Origin: Macrostomum lignano
Lineage: Eukaryota
NCBI GenBank assembly: GCA_002269645.1
Contig: NIVC01001992.1
Span: forward strand, 1 to 64,000
DNA: 64,000 bases
Reading direction: 5' to 3'
Shown: one piece after another, positions 3,210 to 56,402 of the stretch
Position numbering within the stretch: position 1 is the stretch's first letter
Layout: every line of letters begins with the position of its first letter
Translations under genes and position numbers: made by a program
The notes under the pieces: model-generated
What the model saw: only the letters and a program-made list of their open reading frames with translations
Told to the model about the DNA's origin: nothing
Databases searched by the model: none

Positions 3210-6200
3210 TTAATGCCAACGAAGCTTAACAGTTTCATCAGATCTATCTGCTGTTGAATGAGTCGAATTAGGTGCCATCGAGGAGTTTCTGTTCGAGCAG
3301 TGCGGCTCGCGACTTGGTCGCTTCAAAGAATAAATCAGGAAGTCCAGCACGTACATCTGTCGAGGGGTTACGTAGTGAAACGATATCGAGGTATCGCTAC
3401 AGCATTCGGGACCCTGGAATTAAAGGTGGTGTGGGAAGATGCTTTTTACTAACAACTGCTTAAACACAATGGGAATTTCTGTTTAGGCATAACCAAGGTA
3501 CAGAACTCTGAGCCCCAGTCTGAGCACAGGGTGGAGTCCAGTCTGAGCACAGGGTGGAGTCCCAGTCTGAGCACAGGGTGGAGTCCCAGTCTGAGCACAG
3601 GGTGGAGTCCCAGTCTGAGCACAGGGTGGAGTCCCAGTCTGAGCACAGGGTGGAGTCCCAGTCTGAGCACAGGGTGGAGTCCCAGTCTGAGCACAGGGTA
3701 GAGAGTCCCAGTCTGAGCACAGGGTAGAGAGTCCCAGTCTGAGCACAGGGTGGAGAGTCCCAGTCTGAGCACAGGGTGGAGTCCCAGTCTGAGCACAGGG
3801 TGGAGTCCCAGTCTGAGCACAGGGTGGAGTCCCAGTCTGAGCACAGGGTGGAGTCCCAGCTCCATCGTATCAGCTCACCTCTCGCAGAGGATAATAATTG
3901 TAGCGGCGCAGCCAGTTACCAGGCGGAATGCCGCCCGGAGGCAGGTGTTGCTCGGGCTGGAACGGGTGAAATCTCTCTCGGCCAAGGCTGTCCAGCGAGT
4001 TCAGCACGCGTACGCCGAGCATGTTCATACAGGAGCCTGGGATCAGTGCGTTAGTAGTGAGATATATAAAAATTTCATGTAGTACTAGACTACTGGTATA
4101 TAAAACAATATTTAATTTTTTAAAGTAGTTGCAAGACTTATAGTCCAAAAAGTACTTTCAAAGTTTATAGTCCAGAATAGTACTTTCAAATCAAAGGATA
4201 TGCTTCTGGAGGTCTAGGATGTTTATAAAAATTAAAGAAACAGTTTTAAAGTGCAATATCTACTTTAGAAAGCTCTCCTAAAGGCCTCTTAAGATTGCAG
4301 GATGATTCCAATAAAGTACACGAAGCACTTTAACATCGGAGCAAGCGCGCACCCAGATTAACGTCCTCGCTAATAAACTGGCCAGAGCAGGCGGAGTCCC
4401 GGCTAGGCAGGCCCAGGTCAACAAATTTGCGCACGGCTGCTCTAGACAGCACGTAGCCGGCCCCGCCGGACATGTAACCCTGCCGGACAAATGGCCGGAA
4501 TCTCCGGCCGCTGTACAACGGCTCGTCGGGATCAGCGTCGGCCAGCAGACTGCGCAGGTTGTCAATCACTACGTAGGTGTCGTCGTCGGCCTTCAAAAAG
4601 AAATCGTACTTGGCTAGAAGGCCGCTGCGTTGAAGATAGCTCAGAGCCGCTGTGGTCTTCTTCCACAGATTGGCCCGACCTTCGGGCACGTCCAGGGCTG
4701 CGGAGGTGGCCAGTTTGAGCAGGATGTGCTTGGGATTCGGAGGCACTGATCTACCAGTGACCAACTTGGGATTCGGAGGCACTGATCTACCACAGTGACC
4801 AACTTGGGATTCAGAGGCACTGATCTACCAGTGACCAACTTGGGATTCGGAGGCACTGATCTACCACAGTGACCAACTTGGGATTCAGAGGCACTGATCT
4901 ACCACAGTGACCAACTTGAGATTCGGAGGCACTGATCTACCACAGTGACCAACTTGGGATTCAGAGGCACTGATCTACCAGTGACCAACTTGAGATTTGG
5001 AGGCACTGATCTACCACAGTGACCAACTTGGGATTCAGAGGCACTGATCTACCACAGTGACCAACTTGAGATTCGGAGGCACTGATCTACCACAGTGACC
5101 AACTTGGGATTCGGAGGCACTGATCTACCACAGTGACCAACTTGAGATTCGGAGGCACTGATCTACCACAGTGACCAACTTGGGATTCGGAGGCACTGAT
5201 CTACCACAGTGACCAACTTGAGATTCGGAGGCACTGATCTACCACAGTGACCAACTTGAGATTCGGAGGCACTGATCTACCACAGTGACCAACTTGAGAT
5301 TCGGAGGCACTGATCTACCACAGTGACCAACTTGAGATTCGGAGGCACTGATCTACCACAGTGACCAACTTGGGATTCAGAGGCACTGATCTACCACAGT
5401 GACCAACTTGGGATTCAGAGGCACTGATCTACCACAGTGACCAACTTGGGATGCAAAGGCACTGATCTACCACAGTGACCAACTTGAGATTCGGAGGCAC
5501 TGATCTACCACAGTGACCAACTTGGGATTTGGAGGCACTGATCTACCACAGTGACCAACTTGGGATTCAGAGGCACTGATCTACCACAGTGACCAATTGG
5601 GATTCAGAGGCACTGATCTACCAGTGACCAACTTGGGATTCAGAGGCACTGATCTACCACAGTGACCAACTTGGGATGCAAAGGCACTGATCTACCACAG
5701 TGACCAACTTGAGATTCAGAGGCACTGATCTACCAGTGACCAACTTGGGATGCAAAGGCACTGATCTACCACAGTGACCAACTTGGGATTCGGAGGCACT
5801 GATCTACCACAGTGGCAAACTGAGGTTGAAGAAGCGCAAACAGATTACCATGAGAGCTCACCAACAGAAGGCAGAGACGGATCAGAAACGGTGCTCATAA
5901 AGGTGTACCCGTTGCATCTGGACAACCAGGTTGACTTCACGTGATAAGCCTTACTGGCGTGATTCTCCGGCGAGGTGACTACCCAGCAGAAAATTCGAAC
6001 CCGCGACCATAGTGGATCGCCGCTAGACCGAGGCTGTTTCTTGACAGACTGCGGCCCGGGCTGCAGTGGCTGCTGGAGCTCCACATGTGGCAGATAGGCC
6101 TGAGAGGCTGGACGCCAGCAGTTGCGCTGTTGCCAGGCCGGGAACAGGCCCAGACTGATGATGCTGCCCAGGCAGAAGGAGACTGCGCAGCTGCCTAGCA

Positions 6201-6216
6201 ACAGGCAGTTCCGCAT
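3210..6216 (-). CDS. C1GALT1: Glycoprotein-N-acetylgalactosamine 3-beta-galactosyltransferase 1 (core 1 T-synthase), 353 aa; exons 6216-5862, 4697-4353, 4036-3879, 3413-3210
   Basis: GT-AG splicing gives an open frame. It has an N-terminal TM anchor and the family motifs CWVVTSPENH, FLKADDDTY, GYMSGGAGYVLS, EDVNLG, GRERFHPF and CCSDTSISFHYV. Confidence 0.93.
3514..3859. repeat. 24-nt minisatellite (CCCAGTCTGAGCACAGGGTGGAGT), ~14 copies, C1GALT1 intron 3
   Basis: Direct tandem periodicity. Confidence 0.97.
4729..5814. repeat. 36-38-nt minisatellite (TTGGGATTCGGAGGCACTGATCTACCACAGTGACCAAC), ~28 copies, C1GALT1 intron 1
   Basis: Direct tandem periodicity; fills almost all of intron 4698-5861. 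Confidence 0.97.
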
Positions 6217-6283
6217 GGGCTGGATTGGGGAAGCGGTTGCCAGGGTAATTAGAGGCTAGTATTGGGACGATTCTATGCTTGAT

Positions 6284-6610
6284 GGGCGATTCTAGATAGC
6301 TGAGGGGCGATTCTAGATGGCTGAGGGGCGATTCTAGATGGCTGAGGGGCGATTCTAGATAGCTGAGGGGCAATTCTAGATGGCTGAGGGGCGATTTTAG
6401 ATGGCTGCTGGTTGATTAAATATGGCTGATTAGCGATTCTAGATGGCTGAGGGGCGATTCTAGATGGCTGAGGGGCGATTCTAGATGGCTGAGGGGCGAT
6501 TCTAGATGGCCCATGGGCGATTCTAGATGGCTCATGGGCGATTCTAGATGGCTGCTGGTTGATTAAATATGGCTGATTGGCGATTCTAGATGGCTGCTGG
6601 ACGATTCTAG
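6284..6610. repeat. 21-nt minisatellite (GGGCGATTCTAGATGGCTGAG) upstream of C1GALT1
   Basis: Tandem periodicity with interruptions; GCGATT core. Confidence 0.93.
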
Positions 6611-6814
6611 AGAGAACTGCTTATAGTTACTTGTAAACATAAAATTATGAGAACACAAATGAACAATCCATAAAATTGGCTAATCTATAAGGTTCACATT
6701 TATTCTATAAAAAATTCGAAATTTATAAGTAAGAACAATGGTACAAAATTAGCATGACGTACATGCGCTGAACAACGAGCGCAATTATGATAGCTATTAC
6801 AGTATGATTCCTAC

Positions 6815-7477
6815 CATAGACTGTAGGGCGATGCTTATCATAGACCGAAGGGCGATTCCTATCTTAGACCGTAGGGCGATTCCTACCATGGACCGTAGGG
6901 CGATTCCCATGAAGGACCGTAGGGCGATTCCCATGAAGGACCGTAGGGCGATTCCCATGAAGGACCGTAGGGCGATTCCCATGAAGGACCGTAGGGCGAT
7001 TTCCATGAAGGACCGTAGGGCGATTCTCATGAAGGACCGTAGGGCGATTTCCATGAAGGACCGTAGGGCGATTCCTACCATGGACCGTAGGGCGATTCCT
7101 ACCATGGACCGTAGGGCGATTCCTACCATGGACCGTAGGGCGATTCCTACCATGGACCGTAGGGCGATTCCCATGAAGGACCGTAGGGCGATTCCCATGA
7201 AGGACCGTAGGGCGATTCCCATGAAGGACCGTAGGGCGATTCCCATGAAGGACCGTATGGCGATTCCCATGAAGGACCGTATGGCGATTCCATGAAGGAC
7301 CGTAGGGCGATTCTCATGAAGGACCGTAGGGCGATTTCCATGAAGGATCGTAGGGCGATTCCTATAATAGACCGTATGGCGATTCCCATGAAGGACCGTA
7401 GGGCGATTCCTACCATAGACCGTAGGGCGATTCCTACCATAGACCGTAGGGCGATTCCTATTATAGACGATAGGGCG
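6815..7477. repeat. 24-nt minisatellite (GACCGTAGGGCGATTCCCATGAAG), ~27 copies, downstream of the ECI1 stop
   Basis: Tandem periodicity; GCGATT core. Confidence 0.96.
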
Positions 7478-7534
7478 AGTCACAGGCTCAAAAAATGTCA
7501 GAATTATCCACACGCAGAGCATTATTATGATGAA

Positions 7535-9492
7535 TCAAGCCTTCTTAGCCTTGAGCTTATCCAGGTACTGGCCCAGCTGTGCCTGCACCCTACTATCCAG
7601 CACGTAGTCGCAGAAAGCGTTCATATCCTCCTGTCTGGCACTGTCCAACCGGTTAATCAAATTCGACCTGAGCATCCGCTTTACATCGGCTCGAGCTCGG
7701 GGCGACACGGCCAGATAGCGGCTAAGCGTTGATTCCGTCTTCTTCAATAGTTCGGCTTCGTTATCGAATAATTCGTCAACTAAACCGGCTTCGAGCGCGG
7801 CCTGCGGACCGATCAGCTGGCCGGCAGCAACCAGACGCTCGCAGTTCCGATTGCCGGCAACAAAACGAAACAATTCAACCAGCCAGACGGGCGGAGCAAC
7901 TCCAAATTGGGTCTCGTTGAGGCCGGTGAGCAGTTTGGGATTGCTGGACATCAGGCGGTAGTCGCTAGATAGGGACAGGGCCATTGCGCCGGCCATGCAG
8001 TGGCCCTGGGAATGCCAGGTGTCAATTGTTACCCGTGTGACTTCTGGCTGCAAGCTTGTTTCACCTGTTCTCACCTGTTGACTAGTTTCACCTGTTCTCA
8101 CCTGTTGACTAGTTTCACCTATTCTCACCTGTTGACTAGTTTCACCTGTTCTCACCTTTTGACTAGTTTCACCTGTTGACTAGTTTCACCTGTTGACTAA
8201 TTTTACCTGTTAACTTGTTTCACCCGTTGACTAGTTTTACCTGTTCTCACCTATTGACTAGTTTCACCTGTTCTCACCTGTTGACTAGTTTCACCTGTTC
8301 ACACCTGTTGACTAGTTTCACCTGTTCACACCTGTTGACTAGTTTCACCTGTTCACACCTGTTGACTAATTTCACCTGTTGACTTGTTTCACCTGTTCTC
8401 ACCTGTTGACTAGCTTTACCTGTTCTCACCTATTGACTAGCTTCACCTGTTGACTTGTTTCACCTGTTGACTTGTTTCACCTGTTGACTTGTTTCACCTG
8501 TTCTCACCTGTTGACTAATTTCACCTGTTGACTTGTTTCACCTGTTGACTAGTTTTACCTGTTCTCACCTATTGACTAGTTTCACCTGTTCTCACCTGTT
8601 AACTAGCTTCATCTGTTCTCACCTGTTGACTAGTTTCACCTGTTCTCACCTGTTGAAAAATTTCACCTGTTCTCACCTGTTGACTAGTTTTACCTGTTCT
8701 CGCCTATTGACTAGCTTCATCTGTTGACTTGTTTCACCTGTTGACTAATTTCACCCGTTGACTTTTTCACCTGTTCTCACCTTTTGACTTATTTCACCCG
8801 TTGACTTTTTCACCTGTTCTCACCTTTTGACTAATTTCACCCGTTGACTTGTTTCACATGTTCTCACCTGTTGACTTGTTTCACATGTTCTCACCTGTTG
8901 ACTAATTTCACCTGTTGACTAGTTTCACCTGTTGACTAATTTCACCTGTTCTCATCTGTTGACTAATTTCACCTGTTGACTAGTTTCACCTGTTCTCATC
9001 TGTTGACTAGTTGCACTGTTGTTTATTCGGTAGGCATTTTACCTGTGACCGAATTTCCCAGCTAGTAATCACAACAAATCTCACCTGAATCTGAGCAATC
9101 ACAACAAATCTCACCTGAATCTGAGCAATCACAACCAAATCTGTGCCAAATAGGTTCAAGAACAGCTCCTGAATCTCAGTGTAGAACTCTATGAGCCGCT
9201 CCCTATTGCTACCAGCCAGTTCCGTCAGCTCGAATCCGGCGCTAAAAATGCCAGCCAGCTGAGACCGCAGCAGCACGGCCCGAGCGCCGGACTTCTCAGC
9301 CTGTAGCAGCGCCTTGTTGAACTGGGCGGCCAGCTCGCCGTTCATAGCGTTGGCCGGCTTGCGGCAGAGCTCGATTGAAACGACGCCGTCCGAGGCGGAC
9401 TGTTCGCGCAGCTGCACCAGTTGAGAGGAGCCGGACAGCAAGCGGCGGCAGCCGGACACGGCTACTCGGCTGAACAGTCGGGTTGGCAGCAT
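7535..9492 (-). CDS. ECI1: Mitochondrial enoyl-CoA delta isomerase 1, 282 aa; exons 9492-9115 and 8005-7535
   Basis: Arg/Ser/Leu-rich transit-like N-terminus and crotonase motifs IFSAGFEL, IQ|GHCMAG, SDYRLM, GLNETQFG (catalytic Glu), AALEAGLVDE. Phase-0 GT-AG intron. Confidence 0.9.
8055..9008. repeat. Composite 10/17-nt minisatellite (TCACCTGTTC / TCACCTGTTGACTAGTT), ECI1 intron
   Basis: Tandem periodicity; the sense strand reads CAGGTGAG/CAGGTGAA repeatedly. Confidence 0.95.
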
Positions 9493-9582
9493 CGCTGCGG
9501 GGTGCCCACTGTACTTTTATTTCTATGTTCCTAAATCATTATTCATAAACTTTACTATTATCAGAAATACTGTCAATACAAA

Positions 9583-9895
9583 CTTTGGCACCTGAGCGAT
9601 TTCCCATCAGCTTTGGCACCTGAGCGATTCCCCATCAGCTTTGGCACCTGAGCGATTCCCCATCAGCTTTGGCACCTGAGCGATTCCCCATCAGCTTTGG
9701 CACCTGAGCGATTCCCCATCAGCTTTGGCACCTGAGCGATTCCCCATCAGCTTTGGCACCTGAGCGATTCCCCATCAGCTTTGGCACCTGAGCGATTCCC
9801 CATCAGCTTTGGCACCTGAGCGATTCCCCATCAGTTTTGGCACCTGAGCGATTCCCCATCAGCTTTGGCACCTGAGCGATTCCCCATCAGCTTTC
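9583..9895. repeat. 28-nt minisatellite (TTGGCACCTGAGCGATTCCCCATCAGCT), 11 copies, upstream of ECI1
   Basis: Near-perfect tandem; GCGATT core. Confidence 0.97.
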
Positions 9896-10224
9896 GCATT
9901 TGAGAAAATCCACTATGAAACTTAGCAACTCATACCTCGTGCATTGTACAATTCATACCAAGCTTAGGAATAATCTATCCAGGCTAGTCAAAGAATGCCA
10001 CAGCTTAACAATCAAGTTCAAACAAAGCAAAATAAATTTATTGTTTGTTGAGAGCAAAGCAGCAGGCTCATACGGCCTCATTAAAACACGCAACGAGGCA
10101 GTATAAAAAACAGTAAACAAAAAAATTACGTTATAAACGCTAAAACAAAACAGACTTCGAGTAGTATAATACGCATTTTTTATCTATCTAATGTGCAATC
10201 ATACAAGCATCTCATCGCAATTTA

Positions 10225-10301
10225 AGTCAGTCAGTCAGTCAGTCAGTCAGTCAGTCAGTCAGTCAGTCAGTCAGTCAGTCAGTCAGTCAGTCAGTCAGTC
10301 A
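10225..10301. repeat. (CAGT)n microsatellite overlapping the stop codon of the ECI paralog
   Basis: Perfect tetramer run; on the minus strand GCC TGA CTGA CTGA... Confidence 0.97.
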
Positions 10302-13300
10302 GGCCATCCGCTGCAGCGCCCCGGCCAGCAGCTGCTGGCACTCGGGCCGCAGCACGCTGTCCACAAACTGGTCCAAATCGGTCTCATCAGACATCGCCCC
10401 TAGTACTGGTCTGCTTAGCAGCGATCGAACCGAGTTAATGGCCCGGGGATCGGTGGCGTGCACCCGAGAAAGTTGCCGACCGGCTGCTTGGTCAAGAGCG
10501 TCGGAGTCCTTGGCCAAGATGTCTACTAGGCCGAGAGCCAGGGCTTGGCGCGGCGTGTGCAGCTGGGCGGGCAGGACGGCCCGCTCGCAGGCGTGCGGGC
10601 TGGAGAACCGACTCTCGGCCAGCCGGATCAGCCTGGCCGGATCGGTAATGGATTGTCTTGTGATGGGTTGTCTGGTAATGGATTGTCTGGTGATGGGTTG
10701 TCTGGTGATGGGCTGTCTGGTGATGGGATGTCCGGTAATGGGCTGTCTGGTGATGGACTGTCTGGTAATGGGCTGTCTGGTAATGGGCATTGGCTGTCTA
10801 GTATTGAGGTGCATTATATTACAGATGTACATCTTGTATACTAATTGCATTTAAAGCTTGCACTTACCATTCAGGCGGCGTGATGCCCTGTCAGAGAAAT
10901 TAGAAATGGATGGGATAGATTGCCACATCATCTTTAATAATTAATAAAACGACAATAACATTCTCAAGAGACAAGCCGTACCACTTTGGTAGGAGTGAGT
11001 CCAATTTTAATCTTGTCGCTGTCAAGAGCAATTCGATAGTCACAGGCCAGGGCGAGAGCGCAACCACCGGCTGGCGCGTGGCCCTGAGATCCAGGAGTGA
11101 GATGCGATCTTGGATGTAGATCTATTGCGATCTTGTAGATCTATTGCAATCTTGTAGATCTATTGCGATCTTGTAGATCTATTGCGATCTTGTAGATCTA
11201 TTGCGATCTTGTAGATCTTTTGCGATCTTGTAGATCTATTGCGATCTTGTAGATCTATTGCGATCTTGTAGATCTATTGCAATCTTGTAGATCTATTGCA
11301 ATCTTGTAGATCTATTGCGATCTTGTAGATCTATTGCGATCTTGTAGATCTATTGCGATCTTGTAGATCTATTGCGATCTTGTAGATCTATTGCGATCTT
11401 GTAGATCTATTGCGATCTTGTAGATCTATTGCGATCTTGTAGATCTATTGCGATCTTGTAGATCTATTGCGATCTTGTAGATCTATTGCGATCTTGTAGA
11501 TCTATTGCGATCATGTAGATCTATTGCGATCTTGTAGATCTATTGCGATCATGTAGATCTATTGCGATCTTGTAGATCTATTGCGATCAGTGCTGCAACT
11601 CTATATTGTGAAAAAATTAACGCACAAGGGAAAAAAACGCTTTCTAAAATTATGATTGTTTTTACCCCCCGTCACTAAAAGATGTTTGAACGTAGAATTT
11701 TTAACGCTAAATTCGAATTTTATATTTAATTTTTTTCCTTGATTCCAGATAGGCAACACAACAAACAAAACACACAACACAGTGCAGCAGAATAATGAAC
11801 CGTAAAAAATAGCTGTAATGAATTGACTTTAATAAAAAATTGATTGCTAAAAAGTTGCTTGTACTTAAAGAACAATGTGAAAGTTTATCCGTCATAGACA
11901 GTCAGATCAATTTATTGTACTACATTGTCATGGTCACAGGGCTTCTTGCTGGTGGAAGCTTCTCCATTAGCGTCGGCGATGGATTCTTGGTCCACATTGG
12001 CTTGACTAGAGGACTTGCGCTTCGTAGCTCTGCCTCCATCAAAATCACGTTGGTCTAGCATTTGGCGGTTTTTTTCCACTGCCATTTCGGCTTTCTGGGC
12101 AGCCTCCCGCTCACGCTGCGCTTGCTTTAGGTGCTCAGCGACCTTCTGCAGCGCCAACTCTGCTTCGGTGACCTTTCGATTGGCTTCCTGCCTGAGGTTA
12201 TGAGCAGCCTTCTCTCGCTGGCGAATCTTCGTTGCTTGCTCTAGGCGCTGCATTTCGCGATTTGCTGCCTCAGCATCCTTGGCCGCTTGCACTGCAGCAG
12301 CCGCCTGAGCCTTTTCTGTTGCCTTACGCTTTTTCTTTTCTGCCTGGTGGGCGAAATACTTGGCTCGTGCTTCGATCCCGAGATCAATCAGGTTCCGACT
12401 GATGTTCGCATAGATGCACAGTTGCTGAGTTGAGCAAAGGAAGCTACGAACTCGAAGATGAGCTAGACGAGTGGTGTCAGCCATTGCGTTTCGCTTTGAA
12501 TTATCATCGATGTCACTTGACTTCCCTATAGCACGTTCTGGATCGGCATTGGCGTGGAAGAAGGTCATGACAGCTTGCGCTAACTTAGTCATCAAGGGGA
12601 ACGCTGGCTCGTCGAAGATGTTCTTCTTATTGGCGACCTGACGCCAGAAAAGTGCTGGTGCTGGGTAGCTTTCGACAAGATGCCCTTGAAGATGCAGCTG
12701 CTGAACTTCTTGACGAAGAGAGTCAAGTTCCTTCTGGCGTATTACTGTTGGCAGCTGCTTGGCCAGCGCAACAGCAAGGTCGGGACTCTCTTCGTCAAGC
12801 AGTTTGCCTGGATTGAGAACTTACAGGCGCCGTAGGAATGGAAGTTCAGTTGCTAGGTAGGCAGCAAAGGCTTGATAGAATGCACGAACCTTAAGAAAGA
12901 ATAGTGCGTTTTGAGATTCTCGTCTTCCTGGGTCGCGGAGTAGAATTCGAGTCTCCTCGCCGACTCCCAGCTGGCTGTCATCGACTTGGCCGTTTCTTCG
13001 CTGGGCTTGTTTATTTATAATCATGAAAAAGGATGGGTACGGTGTATATAATAAGAAAAAACGCAGATATTACGCCTGGTGAAAAAATTATCGCATAACG
13101 CAGAGCCAGAGCTAAAAAAACGCAGCTGCGTTAAAAACGCAGGTAGTGGCAGCACTGATTGCGATCTTGTAGATCTATTGCGATCTTGTAGATCTATTGC
13201 AATCTTGTAGATCCATTGCAATCTTGTAGATCTATTGCGATCTTGTAGATCTATTGCGATCTTGTAGATCTAGAATACCTAGTGAATCTAGAATATCTAG

Positions 13301-14412
13301 TAGATCTAGAATAGGATCTGGCTGTCAGTCAAAAGCAGTAGGCTAAAAACTCACAGCAATCTGGGCCACAGTATAGAATGGCGCGGTGTACAGACTGTAA
13401 AACGCCTCCCGGAAAAGCTTGAGAAAGTCTTTCAGCTGATTGCGAGATGCCGGACGGCACAGAGTGTTGAGATCGAAACCCGACGAGAATATTGTTGGCA
13501 GCGACTGGCGTTAGAAAATGCGGTTGCGGCTGGTTTATAACGCAATGGCGTTGCGTACTCTATTGAGTAGCATACATGTAGACAGGAGCTTTAAAGCTAT
13601 GGGCTTAGGGGCTACCCAACAAAGGACAGATAAGGCTAGGGGCTACAAAAAAGGACAGGTGAGGCTAGGGGATACCTGACAGAGGACAGGTGAGGCTAGG
13701 GGCTACAAAAAAGGACAGGTGAGGCTAGGGGATACTAACAGAGGACAGGTTAGGCTAGGGGATACCTAACAGAGGACAGGTGAGGCTAGGGGCTACCCAA
13801 CAAAGGACAGGTGAGGCTAGGGGATACCCAACAAAGGACAGGTGAGGCTAGGGGATACCTAACAGAGGACAGGTGAGGCTAGGGGATACCTAACAGAGGA
13901 CAGGTGAGGCTAGGGGCTACCCAACAAAGGACAGGTGAGGCTAGGGGCTACCCAACAAAGGACAGGTGAGGCTAGGGGATACCTAACAAAGGACAGGTGA
14001 GGCTAGGGGCTACCCAACAAAGGACAGGTGAGGCTAGGGGCTACCCAACAAAGGACAGGTGAGGCTAGGGGCTACCCAACAAAGGACAGGTGACAAAGCT
14101 ACGGGCTACCCTAGTTAGTAGCCCATTACTTACAGATTTAATGACCAGAGATCGAACGTGGCGCCTCTCTCTAAGCTGGTGCATGGCATCAATAAACTGG
14201 AGTAGAAAAGCCTCAGTGAAAGTGTTGGCAGGCGGGCTGCTCATAGTCAGTGTGTATGATGAACTCGATTGCTCAGTGTCCGAAGTTTGACGCTCTTCAA
14301 GTGTCAAAATATTGTCTACCGCAGGCGCTGCAGTGGACAGCAGCCGAAGCGGCTGGCTACGAACAATCGTAGCTAATGCCGCGCTTCGCAGTCTGCTACT
14401 TATAGTAAGCAT
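10299..14412 (-). CDS. Enoyl-CoA delta isomerase 1-like paralog (crotonase fold), 294 aa; exons 14412-14134, 13504-13355, 11083-10982, 10887-10868, 10632-10299
   Basis: Five GT-AG exons join in frame (885 nt). Transit-like N-terminus; motifs IFSSGFDL, IA|GHAPAGGCALALACDYRI, GLTPTKVGITPPEW, ALALGLVD. Shares the AQIx|GH intron position with ECI1. Confidence 0.87.
10645..10795. repeat. 15-nt minisatellite (GGGCTGTCTGGTAAT/GAT), ECI-like intron 4
   Basis: Tandem periodicity. Confidence 0.92.
11103..11587. repeat. 19-nt minisatellite (GATCTATTGCGATCTTGTA), left part, ECI-like intron 2
   Basis: Tandem periodicity; resumes at 13158 after the transposon. Confidence 0.96.
11588..13157 (-). mobile_element. 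hAT-superfamily DNA transposon, internally deleted (1570 bp)
   Basis: TIR CAGTGCTGC(A/C)ACT at both ends. Exact 8-bp TSD ATTGCGAT (11580-11587, 13158-13165). Subterminal AACGC repeats. Transposase C-terminal remnant. Confidence 0.92.
11912..13024 (-). pseudogene. hAT transposase C-terminal remnant (dimerization region plus coiled-coil tail)
   Basis: ORFs 13024-12821 and 12595-11912 are in the same frame, with one TAA at 12823-12821. FWRQV...FPLMTKLAQAVMTFFHANADPERAI resembles the hAT C-terminal dimerization motif (...PxSNAxxERxFS). Confidence 0.8.
13158..13272. repeat. 19-nt minisatellite, right part (same unit as 11103-11587)
   Basis: Same unit resumes after the TSD. Confidence 0.95.
13605..14115. 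repeat. ~31-nt minisatellite (AGGACAGGTGAGGCTAGGGGATACCTAACAG), ECI-like intron 1
   Basis: Tandem periodicity. Confidence 0.95.
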
Positions 14413-14559
14413 GAGAGGCTTTTATCACTGAAATCACATTGTTAATACCGCAAAAATAAGCTGCATGTTAAAAATTACTAAAGAGTTGCTATGGACGTGG
14501 AAGTTGCAATAAAAGCGATGAATATTTTACTGGTCGCTTACTGAAGTTCATAAAGGAGA

Positions 14560-15737
14560 GTACTGCTACATTGAAGGTCATGGGATATGGTAATAGTGGT
14601 ATATTGAAGGTCATGGGATAGGGTAAGTGGTACATTCAAGGTCATGGGATAAGGGGTAAGTGGTACATTGAAGGTCATGGGATAGGGTAAGTGGTACATT
14701 GAAGGTCATGGGATAGGGTAAGTGGTACATTGAAGGCAATAGGATAGGGCAATAGTGGTGCATTAAAGGTCACGGGATAAGATGAGACTAATACATTGAT
14801 GGTCATGTGATAGGATAAGACTGGTACATTGAAGGTCAGGGGATAGGGTAGCAGGGGAACACTGAAGGTCAGGGGATAGGGTAGCAGGGGAACACTGAAG
14901 GTCAGGGGATAGGGTAGCAGGGGAACACTGAAGGGCAGGGGATAGGGTAGCAGGGGAACACTGAAGGTCAGGGGATAGGGTAGCAGGGGAACATTGAAGG
15001 TCAGGGGATAGGGTAGCAGGGGAACACTGAAGGGCAGGGGATAGGGTAGCAGGGGAACACTGAAGGTCAGGGGATAGGGTAGCAGGGGAACACTGAAGGG
15101 CAGGGGATAGGGTAGCAGGGGAACACTGAAGGTCAGGGGATAGGGTAGCAGGGGAACACTGAAGGTCAGGGGATAGGGTAGCAGGGGAACATTGAAGGTC
15201 AGGGGATAGGGTAGCAGGGGAACACTGAAGGTCAGGGAATAGGGTAGCAGGGGAACACTGAAGGGCAGGGGATGGGGTAGCAGGGGAACATTGAAGGTCA
15301 GGGGATAGGGTAGCAGGGGAACACTGAAGGTCAGGGGATAGGGTAGCAGGGGAACACTGAAGGGCAGGGGATAGGGTAGCAGGGGAACACTGAAGGGCAG
15401 GGGATAGGGTAGCAGGGGAACACTGAAGGGCAGGGGATAGGGTAGCAGGGGAACACTGAAGGGCAGGGGATAGGGTAGCAGGGGAACACTGAAGGTCAGG
15501 GGATAGGGTAGCAGGGGAACACTGAAGGGCAGGGGATGGGGTAGCAGGGGAACACTGAAGGGCAGGGGATAGGGTAGCAGGGGAACACTGAAGGGCAGGG
15601 GATAGGGTAGCAGGGGAACACTGAAGGTCAGGGGATGGGGTAGCAGGGGAACACTGAAGGGCAGGGGATGGGGTAGCAGGGGAACACTGAAGGGCAGGGG
15701 ATAGGGTAGCAGGGGAACACTGAAGGGCAGGGGATAC
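14560..15737. repeat. 33-nt G-rich minisatellite (TGAAGGTCAGGGGATAGGGTAGCAGGGGAACAC), ~35 copies, between ARL6IP1 and the ECI-like gene
   Basis: Tandem periodicity; degenerate left end, homogeneous right part. Confidence 0.96.
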
Positions 15738-16002
15738 ATTAATATAATCGCTGAAATTAGGTTGCATCGAAACTTCAATTGCACCAAAAAAATTAAATCA
15801 ACAGAAAAGTTTTTAGTTCCGAAATGAATGAAAAACCATTAAGTACAGATATCAAACAGTGCATGTGTTTTATAGTTATTATTGATATTAGTACGAGCTT
15901 ATATACAAACTAAATATTAACGAAAGCAGGAGGGCACTGAAGCAGCACAGGAAACTTAGAGTCAATGAACGTTGATTCCTAATTTAAGATTGCTAATTTA
16001 AA

Positions 16003-16240
16003 CGGCGATTTTAAAGGCGATTCATAGGGCGATTAATCGCCGATTTTCAGGAGCGATTAATCTGCCATTTTAAAAGGGATTATTAGGGGCGATTATTCAG
16101 CGATTTTATGGGCGATTTTTAGGGGCGATTTATCTGCCATTTTATGAGGGATTCTTAGGCGCGATTAATCTGCTTTTTTTGGGGGGGGGGAGGGCGATTA
16201 ACCGGCGAATATTTAGAGACAGTATACAGCGGCGATTAAG
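16003..16240. repeat. Degenerate GGCGATT-motif array downstream of the ARL6IP1 stop
   Basis: About 11 GCGATT copies with variable spacers. Confidence 0.75.
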
Positions 16241-16375: not shown

Positions 16376-18170
16376 TCATTCGGTTTTGCGGCCGCTTCGC
16401 AGCTTGCCAATGAGCTGGGCCATGGCCCGCTGAGGCAGCCCGGATCGGCGAAGGCCGGGGGCCAATAGCAGAGCTACAACAGCTAGGTAGGCCAGGAATA
16501 GATTGTTAATCCGTTCGCCAATTAGCATCAGGCCTAGTAGGGTGAGCACTGTGACCGCCAGGTACACCTGGGGTCGATCGCGGCGCCATTTAACTAGAGT
16601 TTCGGCGCCGCGCGCCACAACGTCCCAGTAACGGACTAGGCGGGAGCACAGATCGGTGTAGCGCTGCTCGTCAGCCTAGGGAAAGAAAAGTACAAATCAT
16701 TTATTTATATATGGGCGATAATAGTATTGTACATAAACTACTCGTACGCGATACCGTCAATAAGCGGAAATGCCCGTCAGTGAACTTCGACCCAAATAAT
16801 TTATTGGCGGTGAAACTCATCTAAGGTACACATTTCTTGAAGTGTTGGCTCATTTATATTGATTCTTTGCCCTATTTTCTCCAGTCCCTCTGACCTGGCT
16901 CCAGTCGTGACTCAAACCCCCTGACCTCGCTCCAGTCGTGACTCAAACCCCCTGACCTCGCTCCAGTCGTGACCCAAACCCCATGACCTCGCTCCAGTCG
17001 TGACTCAAACCCCCTGACCTGGCTCCAGTCGTGACCCAAACCCCCTGACCTGGCTCCAGTCGTGACTCAAACCCCCTGACCTGGCTCCAGTCGTGACCCA
17101 AACCCCCTGACCTGGCCCTAGTCGTGACCCAAACCCCCTGACCTGGACCCAGTCGTGACCCAAACCCCTGACCTGGCTCCAGTCGTGATCCAAACCCCCT
17201 GACCTGGACCCAGTCGTGACCCAAACCCCCTGACTTGGACCCAGTCGTGACCCAAACCCCTGACCTGGACCCAGTCGTTACCCAAACCCCCTGACCTGGA
17301 CCCAGTCGTGACCCAAACCCCTGACCTGGCTCCAGTCGTTACCCAAACCCCCTGACCTGGACCCAGTCGTGACCCAAACCCCCTGACTTGGACCCAGTCG
17401 TGACCCAAACCCCTGACCTGGACCCAGTCGTTACCCAAACCCCCTGACCTGGACCCAGTCGTGACCCAAACCCCCTGACCTGGACCCAGTCGTGACCCAA
17501 ACCCCCTGACTTGGACCCAGTCGTGACCCAAACCCCTGACCTGGACCCAGTCGTTACCCAAACCCCCTGACCTGGACCCAGTCGTGACCCAAACCCCCTG
17601 ACCTGGCTCCAGTCGTTACCCAAACCCCCTGACCTGGACCCAGTCGTGACCCAAACCCCCTGACTTGGACCCAGTCGTGACCCAAACCCCTGACCTGGAC
17701 CCAGTCGTTACCCAAACCCCCTGACCTGGACCCAGTCGTGACCCAAACCCCCTGACCTGGACCCAGTCGTGACCCAAACCCTTGACCTGGCTCCAGTCAT
17801 TGGGTAGCAGCAGCTGTGAGGCGCATGGCACCAGATAGTCGCAGGCAGCAGCCAGCAGACAGGCCAGAGCAGCCATGGTAATAAGCGGCGGCTGCAGCCA
17901 GGCAATGAGCACAAAGAGCAAGGTTATGCCAGCAAGTAGGGCGCCAAGGGTGGCTGGCTGTTCCCAGTGAAGAGCAGCGTCGAGGCGCACAAGAACTCGG
18001 CGCCAGGCATCAAGAGTTGAGGCTAGCGATTCTGTGCGATTCTGATGAGCAGTCAGAGAAGACTGCGATGACGGCTCCTGTGTCTGCTGCTGATCAGTGG
18101 TGTGCATAGTCTTGCTTAATAAGAGTGCTGCGGGAGTTGTTTCGACGTACCTGGTATTTTTATCAAGCAT
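16376..18170 (-). CDS. ARL6IP1: ARL6IP1-like ER-shaping membrane protein; exons 18170 (or ATG 18107)-17787 and 16675-16376
   Basis: A phase-0 GT-AG join gives ...DAALHWEQP...DYLVP...NDWSQ|ADEQRYTDLCSRLV...QVYLAVTVLTLLGLMLIGERINNLFLAYL...LLAPGL. This matches the ARL6IP1 two-hydrophobic-hairpin layout as I recall it. Start codon uncertain. Confidence 0.78.
16884..17800. repeat. 29-30-nt minisatellite derived from the ARL6IP1 exon 1/donor junction, ~30 copies
   Basis: Sense unit ACGACTGG(GT/AG)CCAG|GTCAGGGGGTTTGGGTC matches the junction ATGACTGGAGCCAG|GTCAAGGGTTTGGGTC. Confidence 0.95.
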
Positions 18171-47970: not shown

Positions 47971-50900
47971 ATGAACGCCACTCCGGTTCTCAATGGCAGC
48001 GCGCCTGTCAGCGTGGGCGCCACATCTCTTGGCGCCACCGTCCTGGTCTCGGCGCTGTACCTGGCCATCATGCTGGTGGGACTGTTCGGCAACAGCCTGG
48101 TCATCGTCACCATCCTGATGGACAAGAGGATGCGCGCCTCGGTGACGAATTTGTACATCCTCAACCTGGCCTGCTCCGACCTGCTGTCGTTGCTGCTGGC
48201 TCTGGCGGAAATCGGCTTCCGGTTGGCCTCGCAGCACTGGTTCCTCGGGCTGGCCGCCTGCAAGCTGCTGCGCTTCATCATGACCGCTGCGTTTTATACG
48301 TCGGTAATCACCTTGACAACCGTGTGCGTTGAGCGGTGAGTGCAAGCCGGATTATACGGGAGCGAATGGCGGGGGTTTTGAGTGTCAGGTGTGTCAGGTA
48401 TGTTTTAATGTGTGTGTCAGGTATGCTTTAATGTGTGTGTCAGGTGTGCTTTAATATGTGTGTCAGGTGTGCTTTAATATGTGTGTCAGGTGTGCTTTAA
48501 TATGTGTGTCAGGTGTGCTTTAATGTGTGTGTCAGGTGTGCTTTAATGTGTGTGTCAGGTGTGCTTTAATATGTGTGTCAGGTGTGCTTTAATGTGTGTG
48601 TCAGGTGTGCTTTAATGTGTGTGTCAGGTGTGCTTTAATGTGTGTGTCAGGTGTGCTTTAATATGTGTGTCAGGTGTGCTTTAATATGTGTGTCAGGTGT
48701 GCTTTAATATGTGTGTCAGGTGTGCTTTAATGTGTGTGTCAGGTGTGCTTTAATGTGTGTGTCAGGTGTGCTTTAATATGTGTGTCAGGTGTGCTTTAAT
48801 ATGTGTGTCAGGTGTGCTTTAATGTGTGTGTCAGGTGTGCTTTAATATGTGTGTCAGGTGTGCTTTAATATGTGTGTCAGGTGTGCTTTAATGTGTGTGT
48901 CAGGTGTGCTTTAATATGTGTGTCAGGTGTGCTTTAATATGTGTGTCAGGTGTGCTTTAATGTGTGTGTCAGGTGTGCTTTAATGTGTGTGTCAGGTGTG
49001 CTTTAATGTGTGTGTCAGGTGTGCTTTAATGTGTGTGTCAGGTGTGCTTTAATGTGTGTGTCAGGTGTGCTTTAATGTGTGTGTCAGGTGTGCTTTAATA
49101 TGTGTGTCAGGTGTGCTTTAATATGTGTGTCAGGTGTGCTTTAATGTGTGTCAGGTGTGCTTTAATGCTTTAATGTGTGTGTCAGGTGTGCTTTAATATG
49201 TGTGTCAGGTGTGCTTTAATGTGTGTGTCAGGTGTGCTTTAATGTGTGTCAGGTGTGCTTTAATGTGTGTGTCAGGTGTGCTTTAATATGTGTGTCAGGT
49301 GTGCTTTAATATGTGTGTCAAGTGTGCTTTAATGTGTGTGTCAGGTGTGCTTTAATATGTGTGTGTCAGGTGTGCTTTAATATGTGTGTCAGGTGTGCTT
49401 TAATATGTGTGTCAGGTGTGCTTTAATGTGTGTGTCAAGTGTGCTTTAATATGTGTGTCAGGTGTGCTTTAATGTGTGTGTCAGGTGTGCTTTAATGTGT
49501 GTGTCAGGTGTGCTTTAATGTGTGTGTCAGGTGTGCTTTAATGTGTGTCAGGTGTGCTTTAATATGTGTGTCAGGTGTGCTTTAATGTGTGTCAGGTGTG
49601 CTTTAATGTGTGTGTCAGGTGTGCTTTAATATGTGTGTCAGGTGTGCTTTAATATGTGTCGGATATGCTTTAATGTGTGTGTCAGATGTGCCATACTGTG
49701 TGTCAGGTATGCCATACTGTGTGTCAGGTATGCCATACTGTGTGTCAGGTATACCATACTGTGTGTCAGGTATGCCATACTGTGTGTCAGGTGTGCCATA
49801 CTGTGTGTCAGGTGTGCCATACTGTGTGTCAGGTATGCCATACTGTGTGTCAGGTATGCCATACTGTGTGTCAGGTATGCCATACTGTGTGTCAGGTATG
49901 CCATACTGTGTGTCAGGTGTGCCATACTGTGTGTCAGGTGTGCCATACTGTGTGTCAGGTATGCCATACTGTGTGTCAGGTGTGCCATACTGTGTGTCAG
50001 GTGTGCCATACTGTGTGTCAGGTATGCCATACTGTGTGTCAGGTATGCCGTACTGTGTGTCAGGTATGCTATACTGTGTGTCAGGTATGCCATACTGTGT
50101 GTCAGGTGTGCCATACTGTGTGTCAGGTGTGCCATACTGTGTGTCAGGTATGCCATACTGTGTGTCAGGTATGCCATACTGTGTGTCAGGTGTGCCATAC
50201 TGTGTGTCAGGTATGCCATACTGTGTGTCAGGTGTGCCATACTGTGTGTCAGGTATGCCATACTGTGTCAGGTGTGCCATACTGTGTGTCAGGTATGCCA
50301 TACTGTGTGTCAGGTGTGCCATACTGTGTGTCAGGTATGCCATACTGTGTGTCAGGTATGCCATACTGTGTGTCAGGTGTGCCATACTGTGTGTCAGGTG
50401 TGCCATACTGTGTGTCAGGTATGCCATACTGTGTGTCAGGTGTGCCATACTGTGTGTCAGGTATGCCATACTGTGTGTCAGGTGTGCCATACTGTGCTTA
50501 CAATTCGAGATGATGTATTACAGACATAACAATGTGCCAAGCTAGTGTCACTATGCATAGCGCTATGCGAAGCAGCTGATGCACACAATCGGGGATCCGA
50601 CCGCAATCTGCGGCAGTACAAGTCACTGCCCAGCTGTCATGGTCCCGCCATCCTACACTCAGACCAGCAGTTTTGTAAACTTCTGTCTGCCCACTGCTAG
50701 AGAGAGTCCGGAGGGCCGACGGGAGCTCGACCAGATGCAAGGGACAGGTCTCTCGTTGCTGGGGACTTTTTTTTACATTTTTTACCTTCACTGGCTGTAG
50801 AGTTTGCCCTGAGAGGAGAGGGAATGATGGCGAAGGAGGGAGGGAGGGAACGTAAGGGACGGAAACGGCTAATCCTTCCTCTTTCAGGGTTTCGTCTTCG

Positions 50901-53900
50901 AGTTTGCATTTATGGTTACTGGGGACAGGGGGAGCTGCGATGAGGCCCAGCTGCCTCTACCCTCCCTGCCGCTGTTGCTTGTGCGCGAGAAAGATCAATA
51001 GTAGCAGCATTCTGGGGGGGGGGTTCTGCAGACAATCGCTTTCTAAGCAGAGCTCCACTTGCTGGGAGTTGCCACTGCGCGTTGCTTTCAGCCTTGCCGA
51101 CACTTTGGTAGGCGGTTCGGGTTGCCCGCTCCGGCACATGCAGCCTTCGCTACTCTGTGAAAATCGGACTGAGAAACTGCTGCGAGAGAGCGCAAGTATG
51201 CTCTGGTCTGAATCAAATCAAGAGAAATGCACTGCTCAAGAAAGCCTGAATCCGAATCTGAATCTGAATCTGAATCTGAATCCGAATCTGAATCCGAATC
51301 TGAATCTGAATCCGAATCTGAATCTGAATCTGAATCTGAATCTGAATCTGAATCTGAATCCGAATCCGAATCTGAATCCGAATCTGAATCTGAATCTGAA
51401 TCTGAATCTGAATCTGAATCCGAATCCGAATCTGAATCCGAATCTGAATCCGAATCTGAATCTAAATCCGAATCCGAATCCGAATCTGAATCCGAATCCG
51501 AATCCGAATCCGAATCCAAATCCGAATCCGAATCTGAATCCGAATCCGAATCTGAATCCGAATCTGAATCCGAATCTGAATCCGAATCCAAATCAGAATC
51601 CAAATCTGAATCTGAATCCGAATCTGAATCTGAATCTAAATCCGAATCTGAATCTGAATCCAAATCCGAATCCGAATCCGAATCTGAATTCGAATCCGAA
51701 TCTGAATCTGAATCTGAATCTGAATCTGAATCTGAATCTGAATCCGAATCCGAATCTGAATCCGAATCTGAATCCGAATCTGAATCTAAATCCGAATCCG
51801 AATCCGAATCTGAATCCGAATCCAAATCCGAATCCGAATCCGAATCCAAATCCGAATCCGAATCTGAATCTGAATCCGAATCCAAATCCGAATCTGAATC
51901 CGAATCTGAATCCGAATCCAAATCAGAATCCGAATCTGAATCTGAATCCGAATCTGAATCCGAATCTGAATCCGAATCTGAATCTGAATCTAAATCCGAA
52001 TCTGAATCCGAATCCAAATCCGAATCCAAATCCGAATCCGAATCCGAATCTGAATTCGAATCCGAATCTGAATCCGAATCTGAATCTGAATCTGAATCTG
52101 AATCCGAATCCGAATCCGAATCCAAATCCGAATCCGAATCTGAATCCGAATTAAAGGTTCCATAATGCCGAGCACAATTGTGCAAACCGCCAGCTAGCTG
52201 TTAATCTCCCTAATCCCAGTCAGCAAGTCATTAATATTTGTGCACGTAAGCGCAAGCTGCATCAGTTGACGGACAGCTCATCGGGAGCAATCAGCGCAGC
52301 TATACGAGTATTCATTCGGGTTAGTGGTACATTTTGGTCCGGTATCGAGTGAGCAAATCCTGACCTGCATGCCAATTAGGCTGGGGCAGCTCTGGCTCTC
52401 GTCTCTGTGCCAGCCAGCCTTCTTACTCAAGTTGTTATCCGACGCGATCGATGCGACTTATTTTCGGGAGTTGTTGACTGAGTAGCTTCTCACATTGAGT
52501 AGCTGCTGACTGCCCGAGATATGGGAGCTCAGATTTGGAAAAGGATCATGGAAGACATTACCGGTGGCCAAAATCTGTGCCAGAAAGGAGGTGTAAAAAT
52601 AAGTTTGCGTGAAAGAATCAGTGTCAGAGGTGATAGAATGAGTGTCAGAGGTGATAGAATGAGTGTCAGAGGTGATAGAATGAGTGTCAGAGGTGATAGA
52701 ATGAGTGTCAGAGGTGATAGAATGAGTGTCAGAGGTGATAGAATGAGTGTCAGAGGTGATAGAATGAGTGTCAGAGGTGATAGAATGAGTGTCAGAGGTG
52801 ATAGAATGAGTGTCAGAGGTGATAGAATGAGTGTCAGAGGTGATAGAATGAGTGTCAGAGTGATAGAATGAGTGTCAGAGGTGATAGAATGAGTGTCAGA
52901 GTGATAGAATGAGTGTCAGAGGTGATAGAATGAGTGTCAGAGTGATAGAATGAGTGTCAGAGGTGATAGAATGAGTGTCAGAGTGATAGAATGAGTGTCA
53001 GAGGTGATAGAATGAGTGTCAGAGGTGATAGAATGAGTGTCAGAGGTGATAGAATGAGTGTCAGAGGTGATAGAATGAGTGTCAGAGGTGATAGAATGAG
53101 TGTCAGAGGTGCTAAAACCATTGTCAGGAGTCAGTGACAGGGTCCAGAACCGTGCCTGTGATGTACTGTGTCCGGATCGAGCAGCGTCAGGAGCAACAAC
53201 AGCAAGAGATGAATACTTTAACAAAAGCTTAACCTAAAAACGTCAAAAATGGCATTTTTGCAGCAGTAATTTGAGCTCAGGAGACTGCTAGCAGAGCAAG
53301 CCGGACACCCGAGCGGTGACACCCTCAGCCCCATCCCCCATCATGCAGCATCACTGGCAGAAAGAGTCGGTTCTGCTCAACAGAGAGCGCTGTGAATCAA
53401 TGTTGGCGCAACACACACAAACACCCACACACACACACACACACACGGAAAAGCTCGACCCCCATCATTACCCTCTAAATATGGATTTTGTTAGCAAATT
53501 ACCGGAGGCGAACCATCGCGCCTTAGGATCGAGAGATCCCAGTGGGCTACTGGGAAGAAGGAGAAACGGGGGGGCGAAAGGAGCTACCGGATACGAATAG
53601 GAAGGATTTTACAATGCTCCCATTTTTACTAGAAATTGAGCTGGAAATATGGCTTCTGTCGCCTATTCCGGTCAGGGAGCCGCCATCGCACACGGAGCGG
53701 TCAGCTCAGAGGAAATATGCTGCTAATGATTAGCTTTCCAAATTTTCGCGTAGTTCATTTCAGGATCTTGCTATCCCAGTTTTGTATTTTGTACTCTGTA
53801 TAATTTATATAGCATAATTAGTCTGGAGATTGTGTACCCATGATAATAAGGTTGCATTAGAAAAAACCTAGCTAATAAATGCAAAAACATTCAATTACTG

Positions 53901-54840
53901 ATTTTGTGACAATTTTGTATTGGTGCAAGATTCGTTCATATATTTCCAATATACCAAGCTGGGTCTCTTTGATCTTTGCCGCGCCAGAAGTGGGACTGTC
54001 TGAATGGGTGCATTGTGACTGGTCGGGTCTCTTTGATCTTTGCCGCGTCAGAAGTGGGACTGTCTGAATGGGTGCATTGTGACTGGTTAGGTCTCTTTGA
54101 TCTTTGCCGCGCCAGAAGTGGGACTGTCTGAATGGGTGCATTGTGACTGGTCGGGTCTCTTTGATCTTTGCCGCGTCAGAAGTGGGACTGTCTGAGTGGG
54201 TGCATTGTGACTGGTCGGGTCAGTCTGCCTAAAAGTGGAATTGATAGCTACTTGGCGTGAATCAAGCATCAGTCCATTCGACTTCGATTTCCAAATATGG
54301 CATAGACAGAGCCTCCATTAATGGCCCAGGGGGATCTGGTGTCTATTGCTGCACTCTCTGCAACCCCAGTCCACTCAGTGACGATCACTTTCCATTCTGG
54401 TTTAGCGGCCTTCCGGTCCCGCGCTGCCAGAACTCAAGAAACGGAAGCGCTAGGCAAGCCTGCCTGCCCTTCATCTGCAGTCTTGACCCAGTGCGCGCGG
54501 GTGATTTACGGTTGGCAATCTAGATAGGGCCTCTCTCTGATGGGGGTACCGCGGAAGTCCGCAGCTCCTGCTTGATAGACTGATAGATTGTTATGACAGA
54601 GATGGAAGAAAGGTGACTGTATATTTACATCGTACTTCTATACCATATAGTACTCTATTGCCCAATATTTAGCGTCAAAAACGTAAAAAACTTTGTGAGT
54701 ACAAGTGTATAAGTATACACGTAATAAAATTAATTACGCATCAATTGGCGAGAAAGAGAGAGAAACGGATGCAAAGATAGATAATTAAGAAAGTTAGAGG
54801 GAGAAATAGAGGAAGAGACAGAGGGAGAGGGAGAGGGAGA

Positions 54841-54877
<37 letters not shown>

Positions 54878-56345: not shown

Positions 56346-56402
<57 letters not shown>

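Follow-up and report, generated by a model that had tools for sequence, protein, structure and literature searches.

Analysis of a 64-kb window of the Macrostomum lignano genome (contig NIVC01001992.1 of assembly Mlig_3_7; all counts below are within this window unless stated otherwise) places four genes on the minus strand between positions 3210 and 18125. In order of transcription they encode a RETREG-like protein, two proteins of the enoyl-CoA hydratase/isomerase family (ECH-C and ECH-B) and a C1GALT1-like protein, and the three spacers between them contain four tandem arrays (A1 to A4) whose units carry the hexamer GCGATT, read as AAUCGC in the sense of the transcripts. GCGATT occurs 68 times on the plus strand of the window and 10 times on its minus strand, and 60 of the 68 plus-strand copies lie inside the four arrays (12 in A1, 26 in A2, 11 in A3 and 11 in A4); because these 60 copies stem from four amplification events, they are not 60 observations. 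An initial annotation had pointed to the four arrays and their single orientation, to their confinement to the spacers of the cluster, and to the placement of two of them about 65 and 90 nt upstream of putative acceptors and of the other two after stop codons. Each of these points is borne out, as is the absence of the hexamer from every other array consensus of the window, which has about 48 arrays; the array at 11115/13158 has GCGATC.

The four arrays and their operon-like setting

A1 (6280..6611, minus strand) is a 21-bp minisatellite of about 16 units with the sense unit AATCGCCCCTCAGCCATCTAG (85% matches by Tandem Repeats Finder, TRF). It lies between an AATAAA at 6699, the only one of its spacer, and the acceptor and ATG of the C1GALT1-like gene, and it stops 60-65 nt upstream of the CAG found 3 nt before that ATG. 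A2 (6815..7477, minus strand; TRF) is a 24-bp minisatellite of about 26 units with the sense unit AATCGCCCTACGGTCCTTCATGGG and the variants ..CCATGGTAGG and ..TATAATAGG; since it starts 58 nt past the ECH-B stop codon and upstream of the sole AATAAA in its spacer, it probably lies within the 3' untranslated region of ECH-B. A3 (9583..9898, minus strand; TRF) comprises 11.3 units of 28 bp, 98% homogeneous, with the sense unit AATCGCTCAGGTGCCAAAGCTGATGGGG; it is situated between an AATAAA at 10037 and the acceptor and ATG of ECH-B, and the CAG found 2 nt before the ATG lies about 88 nt downstream of its end. A4 (16003..16240, minus strand; TRF) is an old, degenerate 12-bp array of AATCGCCCCTAAA-like units that starts 135 nt past the RETREG-like stop codon and has a 36-bp higher-order unit, the sub-units of which carry GCGATT, GCCATT and GGGATT. 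All four consist of head-to-tail units within the 10-100-bp range of minisatellites (21, 24, 28 and 12/36 bp; 11-26 copies; 79-98% matches by TRF).

Public annotation of the four genes supports the view that the cluster is operon-like and spliced-leader (SL) trans-spliced. Genes in the M. lignano annotation were cut from transcriptional units at SL and poly(A) signals, and transcripts are named by transcriptional-unit cluster (PMC5730564). The RETREG/ARL6IP-like gene (16376..18125, minus strand; PAA61848.1, Mlig000301g1, flagged 'partial') and ECH-C (10299..14412, minus strand; PAA61847.1, Mlig000301g2), which encode unrelated proteins, have one transcriptional-unit prefix, and in a second genomic copy of the cluster ECH-C and ECH-B are Mlig000072g3 and Mlig000072g4. 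Two annotated coding sequences begin exactly at acceptors guessed by the initial annotation and not at an ATG: that of the RETREG-like gene at 18125, directly after the acceptor CTCCCGCAG, and that of the C1GALT1-like gene at 6219, where the acceptor AATCCAG has just ended and the ATG follows one codon on at 6216. Only one of the four putative acceptors, the TTTCAG of ECH-C (14428..14433, minus strand; 15 nt before the ATG), fits YTNCAG, the published trans-splice motif of M. lignano (PMC8629364). The spacers measure 1318, 806 and 1963 nt; subtraction of their arrays leaves 323, 416 and 556 nt. Operons in this species have been recognized at a repeat-adjusted distance below 1 kb, and it takes the subtraction of repeats to bring out the modal spacer of about 100 nt (PMC8629364). 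The genes are thus same-strand neighbours at adjusted distances below 1 kb with SL-trans-spliced downstream members, trans-splicing being taken from the annotation, and the operon framing of the initial annotation stands on the shared transcriptional-unit prefixes, the coding sequences that start at acceptors and these adjusted spacers.

The last gene of the cluster, the C1GALT1-like (Fringe-family) gene, occupies 3210..6219 on the minus strand (L096 18194-21203 maps to window 6219-3210). ECH-B (7535..9492, minus strand; PAA61846.1, Mlig000072g1) has two exons, and its 282-aa model matches PAA57508.1 at 99% and equal length in an exhaustive HMMER search, the annotated isoform PAA61846.1 having 292 aa. 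ECH-C, with five exons and 294 aa, is an ancient tandem paralogue of ECH-B: the two proteins are about 31% identical, and both genes have an intron at the same place, ahead of the GH..AG active-site segment. The arrays inside these homologous introns are unrelated, which indicates that they arose long after the genes were duplicated.

Two further arrays in the spacers are without the motif. A 33-bp array (14568..15736, minus strand), 135 nt upstream of TTTCAG, is the one nearest the ECH-C acceptor and serves as a control. The other is a (TGAC)n microsatellite (10225..10302, minus strand) whose first unit is the TGA stop codon of ECH-C; this slippage-prone repeat starts exactly where the reading frame ends, and its copy number is 19.5, 11.5 and 36.5 in three genomic copies of the cluster.

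Kinship and turnover of the array units

The initial annotation held the units of the four arrays to be otherwise unrelated, which alignment contradicts. A1 aligns with the common A2 variant over the whole unit with three 1-nt indels (score 25, reached in 2 of 5000 shuffles; fixing the hexamer raises this to 43 of 5000, p=0.009). With the hexamer likewise fixed, A1 and A4 have in common AGGGGCGATT (10 nt) plus TGAGGG..GATTCT (p=0.03), A2 and A3 have in common GCGATTCCC (about 9 nt; p=0.11), and the pairs A1-A3 and A3-A4 have nothing beyond the hexamer (p~0.5). Among 1406 pairwise unit comparisons A1-A4 ranks 7th, A1-A2 8th and A2-A3 16th. Similarity of this kind, extending beyond the hexamer, is expected from common descent. 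The longer core GGGCGATT is found in three arrays, yet the kinship of A1 and A2 extends along the entire unit, and A3 is linked only by 9 nt.

Such kinship is a general property of neighbouring arrays. Unit pairs with a Smith-Waterman score of at least 18 number 19, versus 8.0 +/- 3.0 in shuffles, and unit similarity is higher between arrays separated by less than 5 kb than between more distant arrays (p=0.003; leaving out the four GCGATT arrays, p=0.008), to a degree beyond composition (the observed value was reached in none of 150 shuffles). Other core-sharing sets include 14568/16886, 8058/9067/13606 and 42311/43474, and adjacent related arrays recur at 42311/43474 and 48389/49176. One array becoming two can be viewed directly within the cluster: the intronic 19-bp array of ECH-C (11115..13272, minus strand; TRF), which carries GCGATC and not GCGATT, is cut into two by a hAT-like non-autonomous element of 1570 bp (11588-13157; L095 6147-7705) with 12-nt terminal inverted repeats (CAGTGCTGCAAC/GTGGCAGCACTG) and an 8-bp target duplication (ATTGCGAT; 11580-11587 and 13158-13165). 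The insertion is present in the window and in one further genomic copy of the cluster (L095) and absent from another (L097). The internal coiled-coil open reading frame of the element has no Pfam match, and the hAT label is unconfirmed by Pfam.

Comparison of the window with L095 and L097 reveals fast turnover. Unique flanking DNA is 90-100% identical among the three copies, and every array, with or without the motif, is kept in all three; all vary in copy number and dominant variant, with differences in copy number of up to about three-fold. A1 (L095 12559-12869, L097 15835-16166) has a core as variable as the remainder of its unit. A2 has 26 units in the window, 37 in L095 and 20 in L097, with a different dominant variant in each, and its invariant block is 15 nt long, not 6. 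A3 has 11, 10 and 20 units, the 20 being in L097, and A4 has 11 copies of the hexamer in the window versus 8 in L097. With units in register, the hexamer is not specially conserved within the arrays. Such rapid change in copy number and variants, seen in A2 and A3, is characteristic of minisatellites.

The three copies are mosaic, with segments of L097 that are 100% identical to the window beside segments that are 90-94% identical, a pattern that would fit gene conversion or recombination, whether between haplotypes or between duplicated chromosomes of the DV1 line. In L095 only, the spacer between the RETREG-like gene and ECH-C holds about 3 kb of additional sequence that includes CT-rich, low-complexity arrays (L095 1052-4080 versus window 15737-16002), so that this spacer is 4204 nt long there versus 1963 nt in the window.

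The explanation that we favour, with a probability of roughly 0.6, is that A1 to A4 are ordinary, partly related non-coding minisatellites that swell the spacers of an operon, and that their core is mostly identical by descent. Replication slippage and unequal exchange would have enlarged each array from a single seed unit. A1 and A2, 200 bp apart, would be sister arrays, probably the products of a split in a single ancestral array, later homogenized for different variants; A4 would be an older, decayed relative of A1; and A3, with its 9 nt in common with A2, may be either a distant relative that was seeded locally or a coincidence. The core GGGCGATT(C) would then mostly reflect identity by descent, the hexamer having no demonstrated role, and the arrays would be tolerated in the spacers while their copy number and dominant variant change fast. 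The anatomy, relatedness, turnover and operon context of the arrays are observed, whereas the route of splitting or seeding and the neutrality are inferred. Splitting has its likeness in the 19-bp array divided by the hAT-like insertion, and the units of A1 and A2 align end to end; the 203-bp piece between A1 and A2 differs from that example in being without transposon ends, and A3 and A4 lie beyond whole genes, so that splitting cannot explain them.

Several observations weigh against this explanation. Local segmental duplication of the spacers was rejected, as the flanks in the three spacers have no homology to each other, the spacers give no self-BLAST match to one another, and any duplication of which the ECH genes are a relic is, at their level of identity, far older than the arrays and cannot have carried them. 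A transposon origin was likewise rejected, as nothing transposon-like, neither terminal inverted repeats nor target-site duplications, brackets A1 to A4. None of these results supplies a route by which A3 and A4 would be kin to A1 and A2 across the intervening genes. The three copies of the cluster, 0-10% diverged, are too similar to test constraint, and agreement among them says little about it either way. Finally, the distribution of the motif is orderly: it is in four of the six spacer arrays versus none of about nine intronic arrays in the same 15 kb (Fisher p~0.011, calculated by hand for a contrast chosen post hoc), it is sense-oriented throughout and present in all three spacers of one co-transcribed cluster, and A1 and A3 are placed alike, each with a poly(A) signal on one side and, 60-90 nt downstream of its end, an acceptor on the other, close to the position of the Ur element of Caenorhabditis elegans.

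Chance and competing explanations

How far a shared hexamer calls for any explanation depends on how it was chosen. The initial annotation gave p~0.006 for a hexamer in a unit, which is valid only for a hexamer named in advance; some oriented hexamer is common to at least four arrays in 55% of unit shuffles with all 48 arrays and in 22% with the 38 complex arrays, and TCTCAC, AATCTG, CTGAAT and CTGTCT are each also common to four arrays of the window. Only the longer core GGGCGATT, common to three arrays, is unusual (3.3% of shuffles), and this figure treats A1 and A2, which are adjacent sister arrays, as two. The shared hexamer is real, and it is statistically modest once its selection is accounted for. 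In sequence that is not part of an array, 8 copies of GCGATT and 9 of AATCGC were counted, where 10.6 and 11.4 are expected, and there is no strand bias.

The alternative that survives best is coincidence, in which only A1 and A2 are related and the hexamer is in A3 and A4 by chance; with 48 arrays and about 1000 unit positions in the window, such a match would be there to notice. Taking A1 and A2 as one locus, a hexamer common to three loci arises in about 99% of shuffles, and the comparisons of A3 with A1, A4 and A2 given above yield no significant similarity when the hexamer is fixed. The segments common to A1 and A4 speak against it, as do the location of all four arrays within 10 kb, in consecutive spacers and in one orientation, and the general excess of similarity among neighbouring arrays. 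In this full form we consider coincidence unlikely; applied to A3, and perhaps to A4, it makes up a substantial part of the probability that the favoured explanation leaves over.

A dispersed repeat family, with the minisatellites internal to a single transposon or satellite family and brought into the three spacers by independent insertions, would account for the chain of similarity that runs A3-A2-A1-A4; transposon insertion into arrays does occur in this cluster, and the A4 region has short inverted copies of its own unit. No bracketing inverted repeats, target-site duplications or similar flanks are present around A1 to A4. The other 46 kb of the window yielded no further copies, and a scan of metagenome contigs for 3x GGGCGATTC returned 94 loci, all of them unrelated repeats, the pattern being one that any 9-mer within any tandem repeat satisfies. 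We hold this origin to be very unlikely. The arrays may also be compared with the human minisatellite core family. Human hypervariable minisatellites, as Jeffreys et al. are said to have described in 1985, share a G-rich core of 10-15 bp. In both cases the length and remainder of the unit differ among arrays and turnover is fast, and the present arrays may likewise be joined by a short G-rich core in one orientation; the human family is genome-wide and linked to recombination, whereas here there are four arrays within 10 kb with the core GGGCGATT(C).

A second very unlikely alternative, to which we give the same low weight, is that the arrays are homotypic clusters of sites for a sequence-specific DNA-binding protein, acting as an internal promoter, enhancer or boundary before the downstream genes. 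Tandem repeats in promoters tune expression in other organisms, and A1 and A3 abut the 5' ends of the C1GALT1-like gene and ECH-B. In the window copy ECH-C and ECH-B belong to different published transcriptional units (Mlig000301 versus Mlig000072), which makes an internal start between them conceivable, but splitting of transcriptional units in repeats is a known assembly artefact (PMC8629364). The unit periods of 21, 24, 28 and 12 bp have no common helical phasing, strict orientation is unexpected for most DNA sites, A2 and A4 stand at 3' ends, and the array next to ECH-C is motif-free. Neither the region upstream of the G protein-coupled receptor (GPCR) gene nor any other part of the window is enriched in the motif, and no known factor was identified for it. 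A reading of GCGATTCC as a B box was dropped, the resemblance being weak, and neither ARAGORN nor Rfam detected a tRNA or known RNA family in the window.

The initial annotation had proposed either an intercistronic element analogous in role to the Ur element of Caenorhabditis elegans or an amplified internal-promoter motif. As an RNA element, AAUCGC(CC) repeats in the polycistronic pre-mRNA would bind a factor or the SL small nuclear ribonucleoprotein, so that the upstream gene's 3' end is formed in concert with SL trans-splicing of the gene after it; this would be a flatworm counterpart of nematode Ur, multiplied by repeat expansion. The Ur element is a short, U-rich motif (TAYYTT) about 50 nt upstream of the acceptor (PMC7668243), and intercistronic regions are mostly 50-200 nt long in C. 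elegans, with a median of 246 nt in Trichinella spiralis (bioRxiv 10.1101/642082). In keeping with such a role, the cluster is operon-like and trans-spliced in public annotation, the motif is sense-oriented in all three spacers, and A1 and A3 lie between poly(A) signal and acceptor with their nearest ends 60-90 nt upstream of the latter. An earlier search for motifs in M. lignano was confined to +/-50 nt about the splice sites (PMC8629364) and would have missed the motif in A1 and A3.

There are several differences from Ur. Ur is a single motif served by a dedicated SL2-type RNA, with whose 5' splice-site region it pairs, whereas here AAUCGC is repeated 8-37 times over 240-880 nt, in an animal described with a single 35-nt SL, and the spacers, with or without their arrays, are not short in the nematode sense. 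AAUCGC is not U-rich and appears unlike the complement of the SL 5' splice site; the 35-nt SL, the part of the SL RNA that was compared, contains no complement of AAUCGCCC, and no SL RNA gene was found in the window. The motif is absent beside one acceptor: the array that adjoins that of ECH-C, the third gene, lacks the hexamer, and A4, in the same spacer, is 1.6 kb upstream (3.9 kb in L095). It is present after two stop codons, A2 and A4 apparently lying upstream of the poly(A) signal. Unique spacer sequence is not enriched in it, and the sense RNAs of A1 to A4 have no shared or unusually stable fold (z = -2.3, +2.0, -1.2 and -1.0). In L097, moreover, AATTGC replaces the hexamer in 10 of the 20 units of A3, all among the 11 units nearest the ECH-B ATG; a hexamer-free variant has expanded exactly where an Ur-like element would be needed. 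Multiple testing, the lack of enrichment outside the arrays and the motif-free array next to ECH-C leave both options of the initial annotation unsupported, a verdict to which the L097 variant, the absence of a common fold and the lack of a match in the SL add. We consider the Ur-like RNA element very unlikely. The broader proposal is that sense-strand AAUCGC(CC) arrays are a processing signal specific to flatworm operon spacers. A bound factor would either mark internal starts or tie the cleavage and polyadenylation of the upstream gene to the SL trans-splicing of its successor, and the arrays would persist in the spacers because they carry AAUCGC(CC); this too we consider very unlikely. We know of no intercistronic signal for any flatworm.

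Array population of the window and significance

Tandem arrays make up 38% of the 64-kb window; most of the roughly 48 arrays have different units, and they occur in nearly every intron and spacer. Simple and tandem repeats constitute 15% of the M. lignano genome and caused difficulties in its assembly (PMC5730564); repeats swell the spacers of its operons, which has been read as neutral accumulation, and transcriptional units built from RNA-seq tend to break there (PMC8629364). The cluster described here resembles the operons of those two studies in belonging to the same species and contig set, in its SL-trans-spliced same-strand genes, in spacers of a few hundred nt once repeats are removed, and in transcriptional units that span repeats or break in them. 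It differs in that the repeats were treated there as neutral filler with no shared motif reported, the core GGGCGATT being undescribed in those papers (PMC8629364, PMC5730564).

Some arrays contain splice donors. A 30-bp repeat at 9067-9142 doubles the 5' splice site of ECH-B, giving either the 282-aa or the annotated 292-aa protein. A 27-mer intron array (8058-9021) has CAGGTGAG in every unit. The annotated donor of the RETREG-like gene is within the second unit of a 31-mer array (16886-17798). Beyond the cluster, an npr-15-like neuropeptide GPCR gene occupies 47971-59636 on the plus strand, with three coding exons and a first intron of about 9.4 kb in which at least nine different arrays occur. 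The stretch of the window from 18.2 to 47.8 kb yielded no clear coding sequence.

If the processing-signal proposal were true, the AAUCGC(CC) arrays would be the first candidate cis-signal for the processing of polycistrons outside nematodes, in an animal that is open to transgenesis. If the arrays are neutral, the cluster is a well-annotated example of how tandem repeats swell the spacers and introns of M. lignano, one in which the birth, splitting and turnover of arrays are all visible. The variability of the arrays matters for genome assembly, for gene annotation, given the splice donors in some of them, and for the choice of promoter and spacer fragments in transgenesis.

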